Source: Dimorphilus gyrociliatus
Taxonomy: Eukaryota; Animalia; Annelida
Direction of reading: 5' to 3'
Length of the DNA: 64,000 nucleotides
Assembly (NCBI GenBank): GCA_904063045.1
Contig: CAJFCJ010000001.1
Span: 2,976,001 to 3,040,000 of the forward strand
In this document: in pieces, positions 35,794 through 53,100 of the stretch
How positions within the stretch are numbered: the first letter of the stretch is position 1
Layout of the letters: each line of letters opens with the position of its first letter
Program-made: the position numbers and the translations under genes
Notes under the pieces: model-generated
The model's database searches: none
What the model was told of the DNA's origin: nothing
The model's input: the letters and a program-made list of their open reading frames with translations, nothing else

Positions 35794-36744
35794 TCTTTCT
35801 CGTGTCTTTCAGTCTGTCTAAACTTTAGTTAGTGTTTGCCCTTTTCTCAGTACAAAGTATTAAAATACAAAATTATTTAATGAATATTTATAAAAAACAT
35901 AAATCGAGTACCGTTTCCCCCAAAATAATAATAAAAAGAAAATCGAATACATTCAAACGGAAACAATTAAAATATAAAATATGACTGTTATAAAACTTAC
36001 AGAGCGTTGCGTAATATATCTTATTTGTAGCAAATTTTTCAATTATTCAACGAGTTTTCCAACTGTTAGTTGTTTAGTAGTTTACTATCAAGTATTAAAG
36101 GAGTATAGTTATATATACTAATATATCTATATATATATATATATAGAATAGTACTAAAAATGAAAGGGAAGAAGAAATACAAAGGAGAAATGAAAGAAAA
36201 AAGTAGAAGAGAGAAATAGAGTTAAAAGACATTAATTATTAAATTAATAACGAAACGAAGAATGATTAGTCAAATCACGATATACATACACACTATATAT
36301 TTGTATAGCATTTCTTTTATTAACTAAATGTAACAAAGTTTATTGGGAATTCGACATAAAGGAAGAGAAGGGCAAAAATATAGAATAGTTAGAGGGTAGG
36401 ATTGAAAGGATGCTTTCTTTATTTCTCTTTGAGCCAATAATACATTCAAATCGGTTGTTGGATACTTGCTATTACATTTAGAGAAAGAAAAGACAAATTA
36501 GGTTATCTATTTGTTCGCCGAAAGTAACATATAGATATATTTTGTACATTAAATGAAAAATGTTCTCTCATTAACAAGAAAAATTTATCTTTTAAAAGAA
36601 ATAAATAAACAAAACAACAAATAAAGTTACAAGATAAACATAGATGTTCTATGCGAATGTCCATGTGGAATAATATTCCTTTTATTATATTTATATTGAA
36701 ATTCAATTTAGTTTAAAACGTTTCTTGCTGTAAACGAAAAAACT

Positions 36745-39363
36745 ATGTTCAGAAGAATTGTATTATTGACTATTTTTCTAACAGTGTCCACTGAAGATAT
36801 TATTGTGGACACACAATGGGGACAAGTTACAGGACATACTGTTGATTTGTCCGATGGCACTAAAATTAATAGCTTTTTGTCAATTCCTTTTGCTAAACCT
36901 CCTACTGGCAACCTACGTTTCATGGTAAATGTATTCTCTCTTATTTATTTAACATTTCTATCTTAATTGTATCCTCATTTCTTAATGATAATAAAAAGAA
37001 TTTCTCACTTCTAGCCTCCAGAGAATCCAGATAGATGGGAAAATTATGTTGCCGATTCTTTAGGACCTGTTTGTCCTCAAGGATCTGCTGGAGTATTGTT
37101 GCTCACTCATCCTTTGTGGGATTCATTTGATGAAAATTGCCTTCATTTGAACTTGTACGCTCCAAATACCACGTCATCAAGTGAAGGGTATCCAGTCATG
37201 GTAAGCTTTGCACTATTTTGCAGACTACAACTTATTTGTTATTTGTTATATTTCGTGAAAAATAGGTTTGGTTCCACGGCGGTGGATATACAAGTAGTGG
37301 CAATATTCAATACCCAGGTCATTTCTTAGCTTCTAAAGGGGTCATTGTTGTCGTTCCTAATTATCGTCTTGGACATTTAGGTAGACTAACGATACATTTA
37401 CTAAACAGTAAATTGACATTTTTGATAATATAATACAGGATTTATGTCAACTGGCGATTCTACAGTTCCTGGTAATATGGGTTTATTGGATCAAAGAAAA
37501 GCTTTAGAGTTTATTAGAGATAATGTCGCTAATTTTGGAGGAAATCCTAATAAAGTTACTTTATTCGGTCAATCTGCGGGAGCTAGTAGCGCGGCTCTTC
37601 ATATGTTAATGCCAGAATCAAGAAGTAAAAAAAAAAACAAAGTTTACTATTTAAATGTCACGCATTGTATATAAATTTGCTCTTTAGGTCTATTTCACCA
37701 AATTATTCAAGAATCGGGTGTGGCAATATCTCCATGGGGCTATAATGAAGAATTTCAAGAACCTGAAAAATATACAGAAGAGGCAAACATCTTATCTAAT
37801 TTAATCAAATATTTGATATTTAGCTCTATAATATAAATTTCATGTTTTCTTATCTTGCTAGGTTGCTAGAAAATTAAATTGTACTAGGCCGACAACAGCA
37901 GAAATGATGGATTGTTTACGAGATGTCGATGCTGAAACTTTGAGGACGACTCCATTCGATTGCAAGGTATTTTAAAGAAAACTAGATAAATATTATCTAT
38001 GGCCGTATATTTTGAAAAATAGGCTGGAACTCTTTGTCAAGGATTTGCTCCCGTAGTCGATGGAACTATTCTACCCAGGGATCCTCTTCAAATGAGGGAG
38101 GAAGAAGATTATAAAAAGTGTCCAATTTTGAGTGGACAAACAACCGAAGATGGATCATTGTATACAATTGCTTGTAATTTTTCTTTAGTTTGTAAATACG
38201 CAATCGTTATTAATTATTAGTCGGTATTCTCCTCTTATTATATAGTGGTTCCCGATGCTGTGGAAGGACCCCTAAATATCACAACGTTTAACGAAAATAT
38301 AGATAGATTAACCTCGTATTTCGCTCAAACCTTTCCGAATAGGAAAGATGACGCAATTGCTATTCAACGTTTCTACTATTCGAACTGGGACGATTTGAAC
38401 GATGGTGAAGCCAATAGACAAAAAATCAATGAAGTAAGTATTACACCTATTTCACAGAATTACTTCAATTATTGATTAAATAAAGATGATAACCGATTTT
38501 GCGTGGGGATGGTGCGGAGATCTGCAAGCTAAGCAGCAATCTGAACACGACGATGTTTACATGTACTTGTTCGGATTTAGGAGTAAGCAGGCGGATGATA
38601 TTGTTCCTCCTTGGATGGGTAAGTTAACTAGATTTTTTAAAAATTGGAATAGAATATCTGTTTTATAACTAATAGAAACATATTAACAGGCGTTCCGCAT
38701 AATGGAGAACTACCTTACGTTTTCGGATATCCATTGTTGGAGGTAAAATCTCTTATTAGGCGTACATTTCTCAAATAGAAGACATATCTTATTTAATTTA
38801 TTACAGAGAAATCCAAATGTAAGGCAAGATCAAGAAATGTTTTTCGATTTTATTCCATGGGATAATCTGGATGTAGAATTTTCAGAATATGTTCAAACTT
38901 TATGGACAAATTTTGCTAAAACTGGGTACATGATCTAATTTAAAGAACTTTTAGAGTTCATTCAATAAAATAATTAAGTAAAAGGTTTCTAACTAGATTT
39001 CTCCCTTTTTTTTTTTAGAAATCCAACTCCTACACCAGTAAAACCACCCGGTGACCAACCGGAAACCAACTGGCAAAAGTTTACTAAAACAAACAAAAAC
39101 TATTTGTATATTACTGACAATGATGTAAATATGAAAGTTAATTATAGGCAAAAAAGTCACGCCTATTTCAGAGAATTACTTCAATATCTAATAAATAGTG
39201 AGCCAGGTGAGAGCCTAAATAACCTTTACAGCTCTAGGCATCAAACGTGTCTTGTATTTTAACAGGGAAAAAAATTAACGCTAAGCCCTGGGCAAAGAGT
39301 ATGACTTCCGATACCATAGAAAAGGCCTACAGCAAATTAGGAAGAAAGTTCATGAGAGGATGA
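36745..39363 (+). CDS. Type-B carboxylesterase/cholinesterase-family enzyme, paralog 1 (13 exons)
   Basis: Signal peptide, [24 protein letters not shown], oxyanion loop WFHGGG, NYRLG, nucleophile GQSAG, acid GQTTEDG, His GVPHNGEL. Confidence 0.93.
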
Positions 39364-39846
39364 TAAAGACATTTTTAATAAACTAATTAGAGAATTGATT
39401 GAAGTTTATGCATTGTTAAAGAATTATAGTAATAATATCATAGGAACAGAGTTAATATTATAGCTATAAATATACACTAATATATATATAGTTACTACAT
39501 ATAGATACTATATACAGATATGTGAAAGTATCTTATACAGTAATAATTCATTATCATTATATACACAAGAAATGATGTATTTATCTAATATTTCATAAGA
39601 AATATAGAGAAAATACCAACTAAGTAACTAATTACATATAAACTGACATTCTTATTTTAAGAAGTAAAAACCAGTAAAAGAGAAGATAGCATTTTTAACC
39701 TTGGAAAAGGTATATATACAGTATATTTATGTATATATATATATGTAGGCCTATGCATACTTTTTTTGAGAATAGCCAGATGGTTTCCAAAAAAAAGGTC
39801 CTTTAATAGAAACGAATTGTTTAAAAAAGTTTCTTGCAACGATATA

Positions 39847-42484
39847 ATGAACCTTAAATATTTAATTGTCGCAGCAGTATTTACATTTGTTTCTTCCCAA
39901 GATGTTGTTGTTAGAACTGAGTGGGGTAATGTAACAGGTCATGTTGTTGAGTTGGCTAATGGAAATAAAATCAACAGCTTTTTAGCTATACCTTATGCTA
40001 AACCTCCAGTGGGAAACTTAAGATTCTTGGTAAATAATTTTCAAGTAAAATATGTAATCTAATTATCTGTCGATTGAAAGCCTCCTGTAGATCCAGAGAA
40101 ATGGGATAACTTTGTAGCTGATTCTCTAGGAGCCGCTTGTCCCCAGGATCCAGTTGGTTTTATATGGTTTACTCATCCCGGTTGGAATCTTTATGAAGAA
40201 GATTGTCTCAATTTGAATATCTTTGCTCCTAATGAATCTCCACCGGCATCAGGCTATCCAGTCATGGTAAAACACAACTTTTACATAGAAATTAATAATT
40301 TTCTTTATAATCGACAATATTCTTGTTCGTTTTCTTAGGTCTATATTCATGGAGGCGGTTATGTTTTCAGTGCCAATGTCCAGTTTCCATGTCATTTTTT
40401 GGCTGACAAGGGAGTTATCGTAGTTGCTATTAACTATCGTCTTGGTCATTTAGGTACGCTATTGATAAACTATTTAGATTGTATCGTATTGAAAATTTTG
40501 CAGGATTTATGTCGACGGGAGATAATACTGTTCCAGGTAATATGGGATTGCTTGATCAACGTAAAGCGATGGAATTTGTTAAACAAAACATAAAAAATTT
40601 TGGAGGAAATCCAGATAAAATAACTTTATTTGGTGAATCAGCTGGAGCATCAAGCGTCGATTTGCATACATTATTACCAGAATCAAGAGGTTTATTAACA
40701 ACAACACTTTTTAAAGAACTCTATGACAAAACTTATTATTATTCTAAGATCTTTTCCATCAAATGATTCAACAATCGGGAACTGTAGAATCCCCTTGGGG
40801 TTATTTGAATGCTAAACATAAACCCGAAGAATATACTGAAGAGGTATTCTTTTGCTTTAACTAGAAATTAGGTTATATATATGTATGCGTGTGTGCACTT
40901 GCATAGGTCGCCGGGAAATTAAATTGTTCGAGACCAACTACTGAAGAAATGATGGACTGCTTAAGACTCATAGACCATAAGACGTTGAGAGAAGCCAGTT
41001 TTACTTGTAAAGTAAATAGATGTTATTAATTCTCTTCCAAAATTGCTATTTACCTTCCAACATTCTAACAGCCAGGTTTATGGTGTGTAGGTTTTGGACC
41101 AGTTATTGATGGGGATATTTTACCAAGGGATCCAGTCGATATGATAAGAGACGGAGATTATAAGAAATGTCCTTTATTATCTGGAATAATGTCAGAAGAC
41201 GGCGTTACCTTCATTGCTAATTGTAAAAATCTTTAAATAGACTTTTAGATTATATAATAAATTTGCATTTTTGACCTAACTAGTTATACCGGAACTCTAT
41301 AATGGACCAGTAAATGGAACCCGATTTGACGAATATCTAGAAAATATAGTTGACTATGTCAGTCAAAATTTTCCATCCAGAAGAAATGATCTAGAAGCTC
41401 TGTTCAAATTCTATTATAGGAATTGGGATGATCTTGAAGACGGAGAAGAAAACAGACAAACGCTTATCAAAGTAAGTAAGCTTAGCTCCTTGAATAAGTA
41501 AGAAAGATGAAAATTGCAAACTAAAGGCGTGACTATTATCAAAGATCGCTACAGACAGCATATTCGGCGCTCCTTTTGATCGACAAGCTAAAGTAAGGTC
41601 AACTGACAGCGATGTATACAAATTTATATTTTCGTATAAGAGTAACAACGCCGGTGACATCATTCCAGAATGGTTTGGTAATAATTAATTAATAAATAAA
41701 AACACGATTATTTGATAATAAATTCAGAATTAACGTTGTAACATTTTAATAATTCCTTTAAATAAGGTGTACCACATGTTGGAGAAATTCCGTACGTTTT
41801 CGGATATCCTTTATTGGAAGTAAGGAAATAAGTATACATTCAAAGAGTATAGTGTTTACTAAGCTTAAAATTTGTACAGAAAAATCCTCAAGTAAGACAG
41901 GATATGGATATGTTTTTTGATTTTATAGAATGGGATGAATTGGACGTTAAATACGCCGATTACGTTGCTACTTTATGGACAAACTTTGCTAAATACGGGT
42001 TAAACCATAAACAATCCATTAATTTTTTTCTCTCTCTCCCACTCTCTTTCTCTCTCTCTCTCTACATATATTTTCATAAACTTAAATAAATCACGCATTT
42101 ACATCAACAGAGATCCTACCCCATCACCGGTATCTCCACCTGTTGGACAAGTTCCAACCAATTGGTTAAATTTTACAAAAAGCGATAAAAATTATCTATT
42201 CATGGGCCAAAATAATATAAATAATAGAGAAAATTATCGACAACAACCTATTGCCTTTTGGGATAAATTAATTCCTTACTTTTTTCAAAATACCTCAGGT
42301 ATGAAAGAAATAAACGTTATCTAATAGATAGAAAACTTTATTATATATAACTTATATTCTAATAGGTGAAAGAAAATTAAATCATTTTACTTTCTCTTCA
42401 AATATTCTTGAGAAAAAGTTGGAATGGATTAAAGATCATGCTAAAAAGCGTCTTGTTAAAAAGCTATTACCTTTAATTGTTTAG
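39847..42484 (+). CDS. Type-B carboxylesterase/cholinesterase-family enzyme, paralog 2 (tandem duplicate, same exon structure)
   Basis: Signal peptide, IPYAKPPVGNLRF, EDCLNLNIFAP, YIHGGG, GESAG, GIMSEDG, GVPHVGEI. Introns are at the same positions as in paralog 1. Confidence 0.93.
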
Positions 42485-43016: not shown

Positions 43017-46000
43017 ATGAATTATCCAAAAGAGTTGAAGGAGCCTAAAGTGTTAAGAATATTTTTTTCATCTCCATTCAATGGTATGGAGATAGAGAGA
43101 GAAGAATTAACGAAAAGATATTGGCCAAGAATACAATCTCTTTGCAAGTATATTATTTCAAACTATCATATATTCTCCATTCTATAAACCTGAATTATAC
43201 AGTGTACATGGACTACAGTTTCGTGCTGTTGATATGAGGTGGGGAATCACTTCGCAAAGTTCGGATGCTGCTAGAGTCATTCAGATTTGCCTTGCAGAAG
43301 CTGCAAGATCTGATATATTTGTTGGATTTTATGGGCAAAGATACGGATGGCATGGCGAAAATGATAAAACTCTTCAAAAGAATTTTGATAATGCATTACC
43401 AAGCTTTCCGTGGATTGATAAATATAGAGATAGGAGTGTTACTGAATTAGAATTTTTAGCAGGACATTTGAACAATCCCGGAAAAATTCCAGCATGTTTA
43501 TGCTTTCGAGATAAGGTATCTCCTAATTTATAGCAATAATAATCAACATAAGAGATATTTTTATCTTTTTTATCCGTTTAATAACTAAAACAAAATGCGT
43601 GCAGAAATTTGACGACAAGAAAGTAGAAGAAGCAGAAAGAGTAGACAAAAAAGCTGCCAACAAATGGAAAATTGAGAGTGAAGTTGCCGAATTAAGAATG
43701 AATGATTTGAAAAGAAGAGTAAAGGAAACTGAAGACGCAGTAAGTTATATCATATGAAATAGCAATAGAGCATCTTAAATCATATTATTCTCAGGCCTTA
43801 GGAGTTGATATCTGCTATAAAACTCCTGAAGAGGTAATGAATTCAAATATCTATACTAATATCATTAATTTAATATCAATTATATTTTGAAAGGGAGCAA
43901 AGTTCATGTTCGATTGCATCTGGAAACATTTAAATGATTATTTATTAATTCATTTAAGATCGACTGGTGAACAATCAAGACTATTAAAACAATTGACTCT
44001 GCATAGTCAATTTACTGAAAGCCGATGTAAGATTTATGAAGAGGATCAAACACTTTTGGATAAGTTGTCAAATTATATCAACAGTAACAATAACATTAAA
44101 TACATTTAAGTAGAAGATATAAAATAGTTAACTACTCTTTGTAGCATCCAACTCAAAACCTATATGTATAGTTGGAGAATCTGGAATTGGAAAGTCAGCC
44201 CTACTATCAAACTGGAAAGTATCGTATTCTCAGAAGAACAACGACGAAGTACTATTCCTGTATCATTTCGGTTGTGCTAAAGGATCAACATCAATCGGGA
44301 GCTTTTTAGCAACTGCTTCAGCATATCTAAATGATATTCTTATCGAAAGAAAACAAACTAAAGATTTCTTTGAAATATCCGACAAGAAAGAATTAGTTCG
44401 AAGTTTTCAAAAGATTTTGAATGATTTTAATGAAGAGTTTAAAAGAAAGCCGATAATAATAATAGATGGATTAGATAAATTAGAGATTGATAAAAGTACA
44501 GCTCCATTTTTCTGGTTTCAAACAAATATCTTACCTTTGGGACATTTTATATTATCAACGAATATTAATGATTCAACACACTTAAAAGTGATAGATGAGA
44601 GAGGATACGATAAATATGAAGTATCCGTTCTCTCTAAGGAGAGAAAACAAGCTTTTTGCACGGTATGATTTATTAAATAATTATTATTTTATAATATCGG
44701 AGAGATTATCAAAGTTTTATATGAAATAGAAAACGTTGAAAGGATATTCAAAAGAATTTTCAGAAAGTCAATTAAACAGTGTAGTTGAAGTTAAACAAAC
44801 TGAAAATCCATTATATCTAAAGGTATTTGTGGAGGTTTGTATTGAGAAATAAGAAAAACTCTCTTTTCCTAATCATGTCTTATTTATTTAAATTGATTTG
44901 AAATAGGAAATTTGCTCTTTCGGATACTTTAGATTACTTGATGAGAAAATTAGTGATCTCTTAAGTGCGTCTACCAGTACTGATCTGTTTGAAAAAGTAT
45001 TGATTAGACTTGAAGCTGATTACAATGATGAAAATAATCCCACGTTTATTCAAGACGTTTGTTTTCTTTTTTGTATAATTTTATATATTGAATTTCAATA
45101 TCTAATGTTTGCATTTGAATAGGCTTTGTGCAGTCTTTTACTAACAGAATACGGATTATCAGAGAAGGATATTTTAGATTATTTAAACGTTGACCAACAC
45201 GTATGGGTTCCATTTTTTTTCTCCATAGAGAAGTTTCTAATAATACGAAACGGAATGTTACAGTCAGTAAATAATTGAATTATCTTGAAATACGGTTAAA
45301 ACGAATAAGAAACTTTGTTTAGAATTTCTATCAATGAATTTGGATTAGCGATTAAAGCAAAATACTGTCCAACTGATGAACTATTGTATGTATTTTCAAT
45401 AATTGTTTATTAATTTAATCTATTATAATGTTTATTGAAAAGGCAACGTTCAACTCAAAAATTGGCAGTTTTCTTATATTCTCAATTTGAGGTACAGGAG
45501 GAGGAGGAGGAAGAGGAGGCGTTACATAGTAATTTCTATATATATTTTTGTATTAGAAAAAGAAAAAGACGGGAGAAAATATGGAATCAGTATTGATGGA
45601 CGAGTTACCTCTTCTTCTCATGAAATTAAATGATAAAGAGAAACTATTGGAGTTTGTCACAACAGAAAATGTTATTAACTATTACAAGTAACCATCATTA
45701 ATGTAATATTTTAATGATGAATATAAATATTTCTTATTTTCCTTCTTTAGAAACAAAGTTAACGCAATTCTGGAATTCTTTTCGAAATTTACATCGGACG
45801 AATTGTATAAAGCATTTTCAAAATTCATTAATAACACTGTTTGTTATAACTATATTGAAAATGAAAGAAACTTTTCAGAGGATGATTTTGTAGCAAAGGT
45901 AATCAATTAGATCTATATATAAATAGTTTATACGTTTTTGATATTAATATAAATCTCTTTATATCTTTAAGTCAATTGATCTCTTGATTTCGTTAAAAGA

Positions 46001-48141
46001 GATTGTTTACGAATGTAAACATTATGAACTGTATGAAATTATTACCAAGAAAGTGATGACACTGATTCCTGTTTCTAAGCATTCTGAAGACAAAAAAAAA
46101 GAATTGAATTTATCAATGAAATACGATTTAGGGTGTATCTATTGTGATTGTTTTGAAATTGATAAATCAATTGCAATTCATAAAGAGCTTTTGGAATATT
46201 ATGAAAGTATTAATAATCTTCGCTTACTTCAACAAATATATCATGCTCTTGGAACAGCATACATTAATAGTGAAGTTTATGATGAGGTTCTAATAGATTT
46301 TATTGTTGATTATTTCAAAATCATACTATGTTTCTTTCATTATTTTCAGGCCGAAAAGTGTTTTGATAAATGCCTCGAAATACTTGATAGTGGAGAATTA
46401 AATGTAGTAGATAATACAAGAGGACTAGTTTACAGTAATTTAGGTCTAATTTATCAAAAAACTAATAGACTAGAAAAGGCCTACGAAATGACATCTCAAT
46501 CAATTAAAGTATGTATTCACCCTTTCAATTTTATACTATTTAGTCATTAATAAATAAGTATTAATGCTAAAATAGATTGAAGAAGAATATTACTTTGGTG
46601 ATTTGCCTTTAAGTATTTCCCATCGTATTCATAATTTAGCAATAATTGAAAGGAAAAGGAATAATTTGGATGAAGCTGATAAACTCTATCTTAAGTATGA
46701 ATAATTTATATTAATTTAATTGTCTACTATTTTAATTTCTATACAGATCTTTTGAAATTATTAAAAATACTGTTGGTGAAAATTCAATAGATGCTGCAAT
46801 GATCTATCAGAATCGTGCAGTTGTTGAAGGAGCGAGAGAAAATCCCGATCTTGATAAATGCCATGAATTGACCTTGAAGAATTTGGAAATCATGGAAGTA
46901 AGATTCTATACCTTTTAAAATTTATACATATATATGAAAGTGTTATTGATATTTTAATAGAAAGCTATTGGAGATAATGTGAAAGATATGAGGTTAACTT
47001 TTGCCTTAGAAAATATGGCCCTAAATTTATTTAACAGAAAGAATTTTGATGAAATGGAAACTTATTTGTGGAGAGCAGGTTTATTATTCATTTTCTCATG
47101 ATTCAATTCAGCATATTTAACATCATTCCCCTAAAAATTTAACCATTTTTAGTTGAGAGACGAGAAATAAATCAAGACTTTAGATCGGCACTTAGCTTTT
47201 ATGATCCTCTCATAATAAAATATGTAAATGAAGATAAAGAATATACAAAAGCTCGAAGACTCATTCTAAATCTATTTCACGCTAAGCAGCAATTGTTTTA
47301 TTTTCTTGTATTATACTTATGTGATAAAGAAATTGGCGATAATCCTGAAAGACCTTACGAAATGACTTTAGAATATGCTTCTGAAAAGTACATATATAGA
47401 TTAACTATAATGTCATTTCTCTTTATGATATTCATGATTGTTTTCTTATTTCCTTTTAGATATCCAACTGATATGCAAACATACTTTTTTAGATTAAAAA
47501 ACGTTCTTATACCCGAGAAAGCAATAGATAAAATAATTGATGCAGCAAATAGATTTTATGTTACAGCACACGAAAGCAAAGATGAGGAAGCTATAGGGAA
47601 TTGTCCTTCAGTATTGGAAGTAAGTATTAAACTCTTGAGAGATAAGGAACTACCTGAAGTAGCCGAAAAAATGGCTATTGAAGCCTTAAAACATGAACCA
47701 GAAAATAAGGTATGAATGATACTTTCCCAATTTGTTTTATCAATGTAAAATATGTATTTATATTAAAAAAAAGGAAATTCTAAATGAATACGCAATTACA
47801 CTGGAAAGCTTAAAGAAAAAACCGGATGTATTAGAAGTTTATGAAAAGTTGTTTAAAATGCATCCTGAAACTATAGAATTTGCCATAAATTGTTGTAAAT
47901 ATTGCTGCGAACTAGGAAAAATTGAAAATGCAGAGAAATATTTAGCAGATTTCGTAAAATTATCGGAAACTAATACAACTCATTCAAATTTGGTAAAGAA
48001 ATTACAAAAAAACAACCTAAATTACATATTTATTATTTAATTTTCTATTACCAGATTCCAATATTTGAAAATGCAATTAAAGAGATGAAAAAGAAGAGAG
48101 AAGAGTATGAAATGTCTGTGAAAAATTCAGAACAACATTGA
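43017..48141 (+). CDS. DUF4062 + STAND (NACHT/AAA-like) NTPase + TPR-repeat protein (NPHP3/TEP1/NWD-like architecture)
   Basis: DUF4062 motifs: LRIFFSSPF.GMEIERE, AVDMRWG, ICLAE, FVGFYGQRYG, SVTELE. Walker A GESGIGKS (44174-44197), Walker B IIIIDGLD, ENPLYL. TPRs such as LGTAYINSEVYDEAEKCFDKCLEI and LGLIYQKTNRLEKAYEM. There are many short GT-AG introns. Confidence 0.88.
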
Positions 48142-50024: not shown

Positions 50025-50158
50025 TCCCTTCCCCCCCTCATCCATTTACCTTTGGAAGGTATTGATTGCATAGGTGTCGCCTCTAGTAGCATATAGGGTA
50101 CTATTGTATTTTTATTGAAAGGCTTTCGCAGGGAATTTCATTTTACCTCCAGTGAGAG

Positions 50159-53100
50159 ATGGGTACGAGCTCATGGAGGCAATTTCGCCTTCTTATGTGG
50201 AAAAATTGGCTTATTCAAAAGAGAAAGACAGTTTTAACCTGCTTCGAAATTGGTTTACCTGTGTTTTTTGCAATAGTTATATTTGGTATACGTCAAATTG
50301 TTGAAGTTACAGACCACGATAAAGCTGTTCAATGGAAACCCTACAATATTCCAAAACTATCAAGAAACGATAGTCTAATCATGTATACCCCTGATAATCA
50401 GTTAACGAAAAACATACTAAATGATATGAAAAATGACTTAAAATTAGCAAGAAAACGTAAGTTAAATCTCTTAAAAAATTGAGAAATTAAAGGAAAAATA
50501 TTGAATAGATTACATATCCCTTTATAATTTAAGCTTTTATAAAAATCTCTATGTTGGCTAAGAATTAGGAACATAAAATAAATCAATATAGAAAATAAAC
50601 GATTTTTACTTTTAAACCAGAAATTTTCTTTCACTTTTATTGCTAAGCACTTATTTAAATAAACAAGTACAAATATTTATACGTACATTGCAGTCGCATC
50701 TCACCCTGTTTTTAATAATATACAATGAATATACTGTACACATTGAGTGATCCGTTAAAAGTATCCAAATGTATTCTACCTCTATTATAGTTGATTCCTC
50801 TTTTTTTTTATGACAGCTATTGGTTTCCCTTCGGAAAAAGCTCTTGAATTGCATATTGAAGATTCTGTACGAGGTGAAGAATACAGACTCTCTGTTGGAG
50901 TTGTATTTACTAATCTAAATGGCAGTCAATTACAAGATTCAATTAAATATAAACTACGATTACCAATTGATACCGATGGTATCTTGGGTCCACGCCGTTG
51001 GTTTACAAAATCTGTATTTCCTGCTTTTCAAACTCCTGAGCCAAGAGAAAATGGCCAAGAAGATTTTAAGCCAGGTTATACTAGATGGAACTATCTAACT
51101 TTTCAGTATGCTGTTGATAAATCAATTATAAAAAATATTAAACCTACGTTTGATGCATCGAAATATGATGTTCAAATGCAGAAACTTCTACATCCTCCTT
51201 ACATCGACAACCCTTTCCTCAATATTATCCAATTTCAGTTGCCGTTTATTATACTTTTGTCCTTTATCCTTCTTGTTCCATCCATTGTCAAGGACATAGC
51301 TTTGGAAAAAGAAAAACGTCTAAAGGTAATATATATATATAGAGGAGAAAAAGAATATAAAAATGTAAAACATTGTTGTGTTATTTTCAATAGGAATCGA
51401 TGAAAATGATGGGATTGAAGAGTTGGTTGCACTGGAGTGCTTGGATAGCGAAATACTTACTTTTTATGATGATAAGCATTTTACTATATACAATATTTTT
51501 TTGTATACAAACTGGTAAAGGAGGAGTGTTTGATAAATCAGATCCTATCTGCATATTCGTGTTTTTATTTTTGTATGCTATATGCACAATTTCATATTGC
51601 TGTATGATCACTACATTCTTCTCCAAGGCTAATTCAGCTGCTGCTGCGGGTGGAATTCTCTTTTTTGCCACATATACTCCATATTTTTTCTTGTCTACCC
51701 AAGTTCAAGAGTTAACTACAGGAGTAAAATTTGCTTCATCTCTTCTACACAATCTTGGAATGGCTTATGGTTGTAATGTAATCGGAGTTTATGAAGGTAC
51801 AGGTGAAGGAGTACAATGGAACAATATTGGAAAGCTTGCGACTGAGGACGAAAATTTCAAAATGTCGGATGTATTCTTGATACTTTTAATTGATACCATA
51901 CTCTATGGCATAATCACTTGGTATGTTGATAATATTCACCCAGGTGAATTTGGTCTTGCTAAACCGTGGTATTTCCCCTTCACCAAGTGGTACTGGTGTG
52001 GAGGAGCTCAAAATTTCACTGGTACAGATGATGACAATCTCGAACATGAAGTCAATACCGAAATGTTTGAACCGATTAACCCTGATATTGAATCAGGTGT
52101 TGAAATAAGAAACTTACGAAAGCAATTCAAAGTTGGAGGGAAAATAAAGACAGCAGTTCGAGGCACGACGATTAAAATGTTCAAAGGTCAAATTACAGCT
52201 CTACTTGGTCATAATGGAGCAGGAAAAACAACTACTATGAATATGTTGACGGGCTTTATTTCTCCTACGTCTGGAGAGGCTCTTGTAAATGGATACAATA
52301 TTAGAACTGATATCGATTCAGTGAGAAGCAGTTTGGGCTTGTGTCCTCAACACGACATTCTCTTCGATAATCTAACAGTTGAAGAGCATCTAGAGTTTTT
52401 TGCCGCACTGAAAGGATGTCCCAGCGGGCAAATAAAGGGCGAAGTAACCCAAATGATAAAGCTTTTAGGTCTTGAATCAAAAACAAAAAAGCTATCAAGT
52501 ACGCTTTCTGGTGGTCAAAAACGAAAAGTTAGCGTTGGAATAGCTTTAATATATGGATCGAAAGTTGTTATACTGGATGAACCTACTTCTGGAATGGATC
52601 CTGAAGCGAGAAGACAAACATGGGACATTCTTCAGTCTCAGAGAGAAGGAAGAACAATTATTTTATCAACTCATTTTATGGACGAAGCGGATCTGTTGGG
52701 CGATAGAATAGCAATTATGGCTGAAGGAGTAGTTCAATGCTGCGGAACAAGCTTATTCTTAAAATCGAAATACGGAGTTGGCTATCATATGACTATTGTA
52801 AAGCAACCAACATGTAATGTTGATTCTTTGACAACGATTATAAAAAATTATGTCCCAGAAGCACAAATGGAGTCAAATGTAAGCGCTGAACTATCGTACA
52901 TTTTACCTCAGAAGTGTAGCAACAAATTTGAGAGTATGTTCAGTCATCTTGAAAGCTCAAAAGATTCTCTAGGAATTGACTCGTTTGGAGCAAGCGTTAC
53001 AACAATGGAAGAAGTATTCTTAAAGTATGTAAAAATTCATCAATTTTTTTATTATTAACTGTAAAACAATTTAACCAATAGAGTTGGAGAATCGATGGAT

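Follow-up and report, generated by a model that had tools for sequence, protein, structure and literature searches.

An NLR-like protein of the annelid Dimorphilus gyrociliatus with a TEP1-type, predicted NADase head domain

The gene DgyrCDS793 of the tiny marine annelid Dimorphilus gyrociliatus lies at positions 43017..48141 (+ strand) of a 64,000-nucleotide stretch of AT-rich eukaryotic DNA with a G+C content of about 28% (assembly GCA_904063045.1, contig CAJFCJ010000001.1, positions 2,976,001 to 3,040,000). This stretch is hereafter called the window, and all coordinates refer to it. Judged by its sequence, the head domain of the DgyrCDS793 protein is a homolog of human TEP1's NADase domain and carries the full predicted set of catalytic residues. 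The head is joined to a NACHT NTPase and a tail of tetratricopeptide repeats (TPRs), and these domain assignments make the protein a STAND/NLR-like switch. We consider it fairly probable that the switch bears an enzymatic, NAD+-hydrolysing head that is triggered by a ligand through the TPR region. Proteins of this kind have already been described in four 2026 preprints, and DgyrCDS793 is a well-preserved further member.

The head domain of DgyrCDS793 belongs to the DUF4062 family. Osinski et al. (10.64898/2026.05.01.722283) reported DUF4062 to be a TIR-like NADase in bacterial Swarozyc and in human TEP1. Le Mouellic et al. (10.64898/2026.09.04.749371) renamed the domain NIR and found that an Avs2 protein, in which the order of domains is NIR-STAND-TPR, depletes NAD+ in a manner dependent on a glutamate; in the same work, eukaryotic NIR proteins were mostly NLR-like with an N-terminal NIR domain, and NIR proteins occurred in 88% of the surveyed metazoan genomes. 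Hornebeck et al. (10.64898/2026.09.21.753143), who called the domain TeTIR, solved the structure of the TEP1 domain and established by mutagenesis that its activity requires F902, R914, R942, C959, R976, and E1008 and depends only in part on R908. The fourth preprint (10.64898/2026.06.25.731849) describes Evangelion, a plasmid-borne defence family with DUF4062. A preliminary description of the locus, made from the letters of the DNA alone, had taken the DUF4062 head for a TIR/NDT-like fold that processes NAD or nucleotides and had called the family poorly characterised. The former claim is now borne out for the domain family by the four preprints, given which the latter no longer holds at the domain level.

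The head domain and its catalytic residues

Residues 1-200 of DgyrCDS793 matched PDB chain 11gz_A (human TEP1) with an E-value of 5.1e-18, and exon 2 alone matched it with an E-value of 5.8e-11. The identity between the head and 11gz_A was about 30%, as counted from the printed alignment. Nothing was found in the PDB sequence search with exon 1 alone or with the NACHT exon alone. A single TEP1 numbering offset of 893 fits all of the nine published residues on 11gz_A (F9, S12, R15, R21, R49, W50, C66, R83, and E115), and the mapping of TEP1 residues onto DgyrCDS793 is therefore secure.

In the alignment to 11gz_A, the catalytic glutamate of TEP1, E1008 (chain residue 115), corresponds to E127 of DgyrCDS793, the second glutamate of the motif SVTELE at residues 122-127 (codon 43450..43452, +); E127 is also equivalent to E108 of PsAvs2 and E97 of KpSwz. 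The other residues essential in TEP1 have the following counterparts, all encoded on the + strand: F902 is F16 (43062-64), R914 is R28 (43098-100), C959 is C73 (43288-90), R976 is R90 (43339-41), and R942 is R56, which opens the RWG loop (R942/W943/G944 in TEP1, R56/W57/G58 in DgyrCDS793; 43237-45). The six residues on which TEP1 activity depends (F16, R28, R56, C73, R90, and E127) are thereby all kept. The pocket-lining S905 is conserved as S19, and the sole difference is N22 at the position of the partly required R908. The preliminary description had singled out the acidic residues of two motifs, ICLAE and SVTELE, as those expected for catalysis. Its choice was right for SVTELE, which contains E127, whereas in ICLAE (residues 72-76) the residue marked as essential by TEP1 mutagenesis is the cysteine, C73, and not the glutamate.

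These positions are under strong conservation across the family. In an alignment of 118 N-domains, the glutamate equivalent to E127 is present in 117, and the positions of F16, R28, R56-W57-G58, C73, and R90 are each at least 93% conserved. The glutamate of ICLAE (E76) is likewise conserved, in 114 of the 118. DgyrCDS793 carries the consensus residue at every one of the 33 columns with a conservation of 90% or more.

The structure of the N-domain was predicted with confidence, and the structural neighbours of the model were TIR, MilB, and nucleoside deoxyribosyltransferase (NDT) folds, in agreement with the fold comparison that the preliminary description had proposed. The modelled N-domain shows a TIR-like alpha/beta fold with extra elements. 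A Foldseek search of the N-domain against the PDB (entries up to April 2026, 11gz not returned) gave no match at E <= 1e-3; procaspases headed the list of this search by chance. A search of the ESM Atlas gave only generic bacterial 'DUF4062' clusters.

Gene structure, transcription and domain layout

The coding region of DgyrCDS793 comprises 22 exons and encodes 1,254 residues. It runs from an ATG at 43017 to a TGA at 48139-48141, exactly the coordinates given in the preliminary description, and a TAA stands in frame 42 nt upstream of this start. Each of the 21 introns is bounded by GT..AG and is 52-89 nt long. Because the gene is split by so many short introns, a bacterial-style list of open reading frames contained short fragments only at 43.0-48.2 kb. 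A 4,309-nt spliced contig from the public run X1 agrees with the exon chain. Of its joints, 15 with GT..AG were listed, five further ones were unlisted, and one was discarded at a low-complexity repeat; the exon chain was completed from the contig joints, the internal coordinates of the contig, and the requirement for an open frame. X1, the kind of which is unrecorded, was the sole run found in the RNA-run search. DgyrCDS793 is transcribed and fully spliced; the contig bears on the fact of transcription and not on its level, tissue, or strand. The reading of DgyrCDS793 as a pseudogene or an unexpressed gene was rejected in view of the open frame, the spliced contig, and an N-domain that follows the consensus at each of the 33 near-invariant columns.

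The public protein DgyrCDS793 (P0001; 1,225 residues) was found through the NACHT exon, which it matched at 100% identity in a search of 1.84 billion representatives. The spliced model and P0001 are 97.6% identical over their full length and identical over residues 1-250, the only differences being two gaps. P0001 is without 19 residues at the end of exon 5 (44027-44083) and 10 residues at the start of exon 14 (45972-46001), all of which are present in the X1 spliced contig. Both gaps appear to be other splice-site choices by the public annotation. Full-length searches were run with P0001, and the spliced model was searched exon by exon.

The NIR/TeTIR (DUF4062) NADase-like domain is encoded by exons 1-4 (43017-43147, 43203-43515, 43605-43739, and 43795-43833; 43017..43833 as a whole, +), which specify residues 1-206; the domain itself spans residues 12-200. 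Exon 6 (44145..44662, +) encodes the core of the NACHT-type P-loop NTPase and alone matched Pfam NACHT at 6e-8 and NPHP3_N at 7e-7. Exons 7-13 (44730..45898, +) encode a putative helical and winged-helix region after the NTPase, and exons 14-22 (45972..48141, +) encode the TPR repeat region (residues 705-1254, about 550 residues), the presumed sensor. When Pfam was applied exon by exon, DUF4062 was detected in exons 1 and 2, NACHT and NPHP3_N in exon 6, and TPRs in exon 14 and beyond. On P0001, DUF4062 (PF13271) scored 37.3 bits at residues 14-99 (cut-off, 24.7; exon 2 alone, 32 bits), NACHT scored 29.5 bits (cut-off, 26.7), and NPHP3_N scored 30.6 bits (cut-off, 24.8). TPR_12 reached 69 bits (cut-off, 30.1; E-value, 4e-19) and TPR_10 an E-value of 3e-16; TPR_2, TPR_1, TPR_8, TPR_7, and TPR_14 also matched, and these several TPR families together cover residues ~760-1160.

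Downstream of the head domain, the Walker A motif GESGIGKS occupies residues 280-287 (K286, codon 44192-94) and the Walker B motif IIIIDGLD residues 373-380 (D377, codon 44465-67). In a comparison with 28 relatives, the NACHT module of DgyrCDS793 matched 38 of 44 near-invariant columns. The region after the NTPase has no Pfam match in DgyrCDS793, and the mollusc ortholog P0151 matches NPHP3_hel at 458-588, over the corresponding stretch. DgyrCDS793 agrees with conserved columns in this region, among them the NPL motif at residues 468-470 (44805-44813). The tripartite DUF4062-STAND-TPR layout that had been read from the sequence is thus confirmed by Pfam on both the exons and P0001; the Walker A, Walker B, and NPL motifs are present as had been stated, and the suggested parallel to NLRs and bacterial Avs proteins holds in layout, with PsAvs2 showing the NIR-STAND-TPR order.

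Orthologs, degenerate paralogs and neighbouring genes

A word search with P0001 retrieved full-length, collinear relatives with 29-33% identity, 85-98% coverage, and E-values of 1e-140 to 1e-180. The sequence matches assign DgyrCDS793 to the DDB_G0287407-like orthogroup, whose members come from molluscs, the annelid Owenia, a nemertean, cnidarians (corals), echinoderms, hemichordates, Trichoplax, a sponge, and an acoel. Next in the search after the animal orthologs came amoebozoan and bacterial proteins with this architecture, and the picture was unchanged in a second word search that started from the starfish ortholog P0186. The orthologs share the Pfam content of P0001, and orthologs from at least eight animal phyla keep the six TEP1-essential residues. 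In the literature, no functional study of the DDB_G0287407-like orthogroup was found; the name was met only as that of a synteny neighbour.

Conservation within the protein is strikingly uneven, and the N-domain is the best-conserved module. The N-domain (residues 1-200) is 45-60% identical to that of the orthologs, from sponge to starfish; the corresponding values are 27-36% for the NACHT module (residues 201-640) and 21-29% for the TPR region (residues 641-1254). With the NACHT exon alone, only 11 proteins among the 1.84 billion representatives reached an E-value of 1e-10. A quick maximum-likelihood tree was built from the N-domain plus NACHT of 52 rows, with SH-aLRT support. In this tree the metazoan sequences formed a group (support 90) apart from those of bacteria and amoebozoans and from the WD40-type sequences, and DgyrCDS793 fell within a lophotrochozoan clade (support 99). 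The best 120 relatives of DgyrCDS793 and those of the starfish ortholog included bacterial homologs but no chordate TTC41, NPHP3, or NWD protein. This absence is weak evidence, because the word prefilter loses true relatives at about 29% identity: P0001 was missing from the search with P0186, though the same pair had an E-value of 7.9e-142 in the search with P0001.

Two tandem paralogs of DgyrCDS793 are found on the same contig. DgyrCDS795 (P0005; 872 residues) was located by tblastn of the model; it starts at 61948 and runs off the window (61948..64000, +), with a 98-100% match to P0005. DgyrCDS796 (P0004; 1,031 residues), the third tandem copy, is annotated next to DgyrCDS795 on the same 3.6-Mb contig, and since P0004 has no match inside the window, DgyrCDS796 must lie past its right edge. 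The head-NACHT layout of DgyrCDS795 is the same as that of DgyrCDS793, and its N-domain is degenerate: five of the six essential positions have changed (F>Y, R>K, R>P, C>N, and R>D), with the glutamate alone kept. In DgyrCDS796 all six are lost, including the glutamate, which is changed to aspartate, and Pfam DUF4062 is no longer detected. Both copies retain the Walker A lysine and the Walker B aspartate. The tree joins the two as sisters on a long branch beside DgyrCDS793 (support 99), with a branch path of about 2.6-2.7 substitutions per site versus 0.36 for DgyrCDS793. Their N-domains are 29-39% identical to that of DgyrCDS793, which is no higher than the identity of their NACHT modules. 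The loss of catalytic residues where constraint has relaxed argues that DgyrCDS793 keeps them for a reason. All six residues are also kept, as in DgyrCDS793, in DgyrCDS13642 (P0157), the closest paralog, which is encoded on another contig and is 43% identical over the head and NACHT. P0157 is annotated as a protein of 1,380 residues that carries PWWP and LEDGF domains ahead of the head and lacks a TPR tail, and may represent two genes merged by annotation.

DgyrCDS793 sits between esterase-like and ABC-transporter-like genes. At ~36700-42320 (+), two tandem multi-exon genes with carboxylesterase/cholinesterase-like motifs (for instance FGGNP..TLFG[QE]SAGASS) in their translated pieces were recognized by eye. 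At ~50150-55840 (+), between the two STAND paralogs, lies a large gene with open exons of 554 and 885 residues that, by eye, resembles the A subfamily of ABC transporters.

Proposed mechanism and alternative readings

Inferred from NIR-Avs2, TEP1, and TIR-NLRs, the mechanism of DgyrCDS793 would begin with a resting state in which the head is autoinhibited. Binding of a ligand to the TPR region would lead to nucleotide-dependent oligomerisation of the NACHT module, which would cluster the heads and open their active sites. The clustered heads would then hydrolyse NAD+, perhaps NADP+ as well, yielding nicotinamide and ADP-ribose, and the drop in cellular NAD+ could serve as a defence, stress, or cell-death output. 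An innate-immune role is our most likely guess, by analogy with these systems. It is also conceivable, though in our opinion rather improbable, that the orthogroup as a whole is the animal counterpart of bacterial NIR-Avs, an active, ligand-triggered NADase NLR of marine invertebrates for which no close chordate counterpart was seen, and that DgyrCDS793 would act as the executor with the NADase-dead, fast-evolving DgyrCDS795 and DgyrCDS796 as sensor or decoy partners, like paired plant NLRs.

The main rival to an NAD+-hydrolysing head holds that the N-domain is non-catalytic and serves for interaction or as a scaffold, in a protein that acts as an NTP-driven adaptor and consumes no NAD+; to this explanation we assign a minor but appreciable probability. 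Most animal TIR domains are thought to be non-catalytic, and several published results weigh against an active head in DgyrCDS793. Of the animal DUF4062 domains assayed, only TEP1 and its homologs show clear activity; that of NWD2 is weak, and those of NWD1, TTC41, and NPHP3 are inactive. All assayed animal domains outside the TEP1 line are therefore weak or inactive, including those of the TPR-type relatives, TTC41 and NPHP3. Moreover, full-length human NWD1, NWD2, and NPHP3 were without NADase activity (10.64898/2026.05.01.722283), and the TTC41 and NPHP3 domains were non-toxic in E. coli or in cells. The scaffold possibility was raised by the preprint authors themselves, and in TEP1 the RWG-loop tryptophan equivalent to W57 lies exposed and might serve as an interface. 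However, a scaffold has no reason to keep the arginines and the cysteine that contact the substrate, whereas the complete set of six TEP1 catalysis residues is kept in DgyrCDS793 and in orthologs of at least eight animal phyla, and exactly these residues have been lost from the relaxed tandem copies DgyrCDS795 and DgyrCDS796.

An active head need not act on NAD+ in the manner proposed. It could be an N-glycosidase with another substrate or product, cleaving CMP or a dNMP as MilB and DNPH1 do, or releasing a signal derived from ADP-ribose instead of depleting NAD+ in bulk. We regard this as unlikely, given that every DUF4062 domain whose chemistry was measured in the 2026 preprints turns NAD+ into ADP-ribose along with nicotinamide, with no cyclic products, and that DgyrCDS793 shares the NAD-contacting residues of TEP1 and has a cysteine where DNPH1 has its protonating aspartate. 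Less probable still is that DgyrCDS793 is the plain annelid ortholog of nephrocystin-3 or TTC41 with a non-enzymatic role, the case that the preliminary description had named as its own refutation. Several relatives are indeed named 'Nephrocystin-3' in UniRef and JGI, Pfam NPHP3_N is above its cut-off in P0001, and the TeTIR-NACHT-TPR order of TTC41 is identical. Yet NPHP3 is without the catalytic glutamate and carries its domain at about residues 234-470, behind an N-terminal extension, whereas DgyrCDS793 has the glutamate and a domain that begins at residue 12. The models specific to NPHP3 stayed below their cut-offs on P0001 (TPR_NPHP3, PF24885, 34.8 versus 100 bits; PF25022, 28.7 versus 33 bits). 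The glutamate, the position of the domain, and these scores contradict NPHP3 orthology. As to TTC41, its domain has been linked to TEP1 only by profile methods (10.64898/2026.09.21.753143), whereas the head of DgyrCDS793 is linked to TEP1 by a plain pairwise search; the chordate proteins absent from the best 120 relatives add weak evidence to the same effect.

With an NAD+-hydrolysing head as the favoured reading, the assays to date raise the question of whether animals use the NIR NADase in NLR-style sensors, as bacteria do in Avs2. The orthogroup of DgyrCDS793 is a good test case, since it combines an Avs2-like layout with a TEP1-type head that has every required residue and is the most conserved module from sponge to echinoderm. 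The Dimorphilus locus offers a natural contrast, in which an intact copy stands beside two duplicates that retain few or none of the catalytic residues. Should the intact copy prove active, NAD+-depleting NLR immunity would extend to invertebrate animals; should it prove inactive, the view of animal NIR domains as mostly scaffolds would be strengthened.

Comparison with known NIR and TIR proteins

In its head domain, DgyrCDS793 resembles human TEP1 (PDB 11gz), the NADase of the vault particle: the two share the glutamate, the cysteine, three arginines, the phenylalanine, and the RWG loop, and in both the head is directly upstream of NACHT. They differ in what surrounds this core. In TEP1, a protein of about 2,600 residues that binds the vault and telomerase RNA, TROVE and VWA domains precede the core and WD40 repeats follow it. 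In DgyrCDS793, by contrast, the head is N-terminal, the repeats are TPRs, and N22 replaces R908; the NADase activity of TEP1 was measured and that of DgyrCDS793 is predicted.

In the order of its domains, DgyrCDS793 is like PsAvs2 of Pseudomonas chlororaphis, a NIR-STAND-TPR protein whose output is glutamate-dependent NAD+ depletion. Bacterial proteins of the full architecture align to DgyrCDS793 or to an ortholog over 75-82% of their own length, with E-values of 1e-60 to 1e-90 and the key residues kept. The animal clade is nonetheless separate from the bacterial and amoebozoan clades in the tree. Unlike DgyrCDS793, the bacterial NIR defence proteins (PsAvs2, Swarozyc, Vulcan, Vesta, and Evangelion) are anti-phage systems that sense the phage terminase or portal. 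A PADLOC search of P0001 gave no match to a defence family; the resemblance of DgyrCDS793, a eukaryotic gene with introns, to Avs is one of layout only.

DUF4062 clusters apart from the TIR NADases and TIR-domain NADase STAND proteins, such as SARM1 and plant TNLs, in both sequence and structure trees and contacts NAD through other residues, which places the head of DgyrCDS793 outside the TIR family proper.

Compared with its DDB_G0287407-like orthologs, the Dimorphilus copy is more divergent in NACHT and the TPR region and is accompanied by degenerate tandem duplicates. TTC41 and NPHP3, with TPRs, and NWD1 and NWD2, with WD40 repeats, resemble DgyrCDS793 in having the TeTIR/NIR domain followed by NACHT and then by repeats. 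The heads of these four proteins, however, form divergent subfamilies with inserts, and that of NPHP3 is without the glutamate, whereas the head of DgyrCDS793 is compact (about 190 residues) and of the canonical TEP1-like type.

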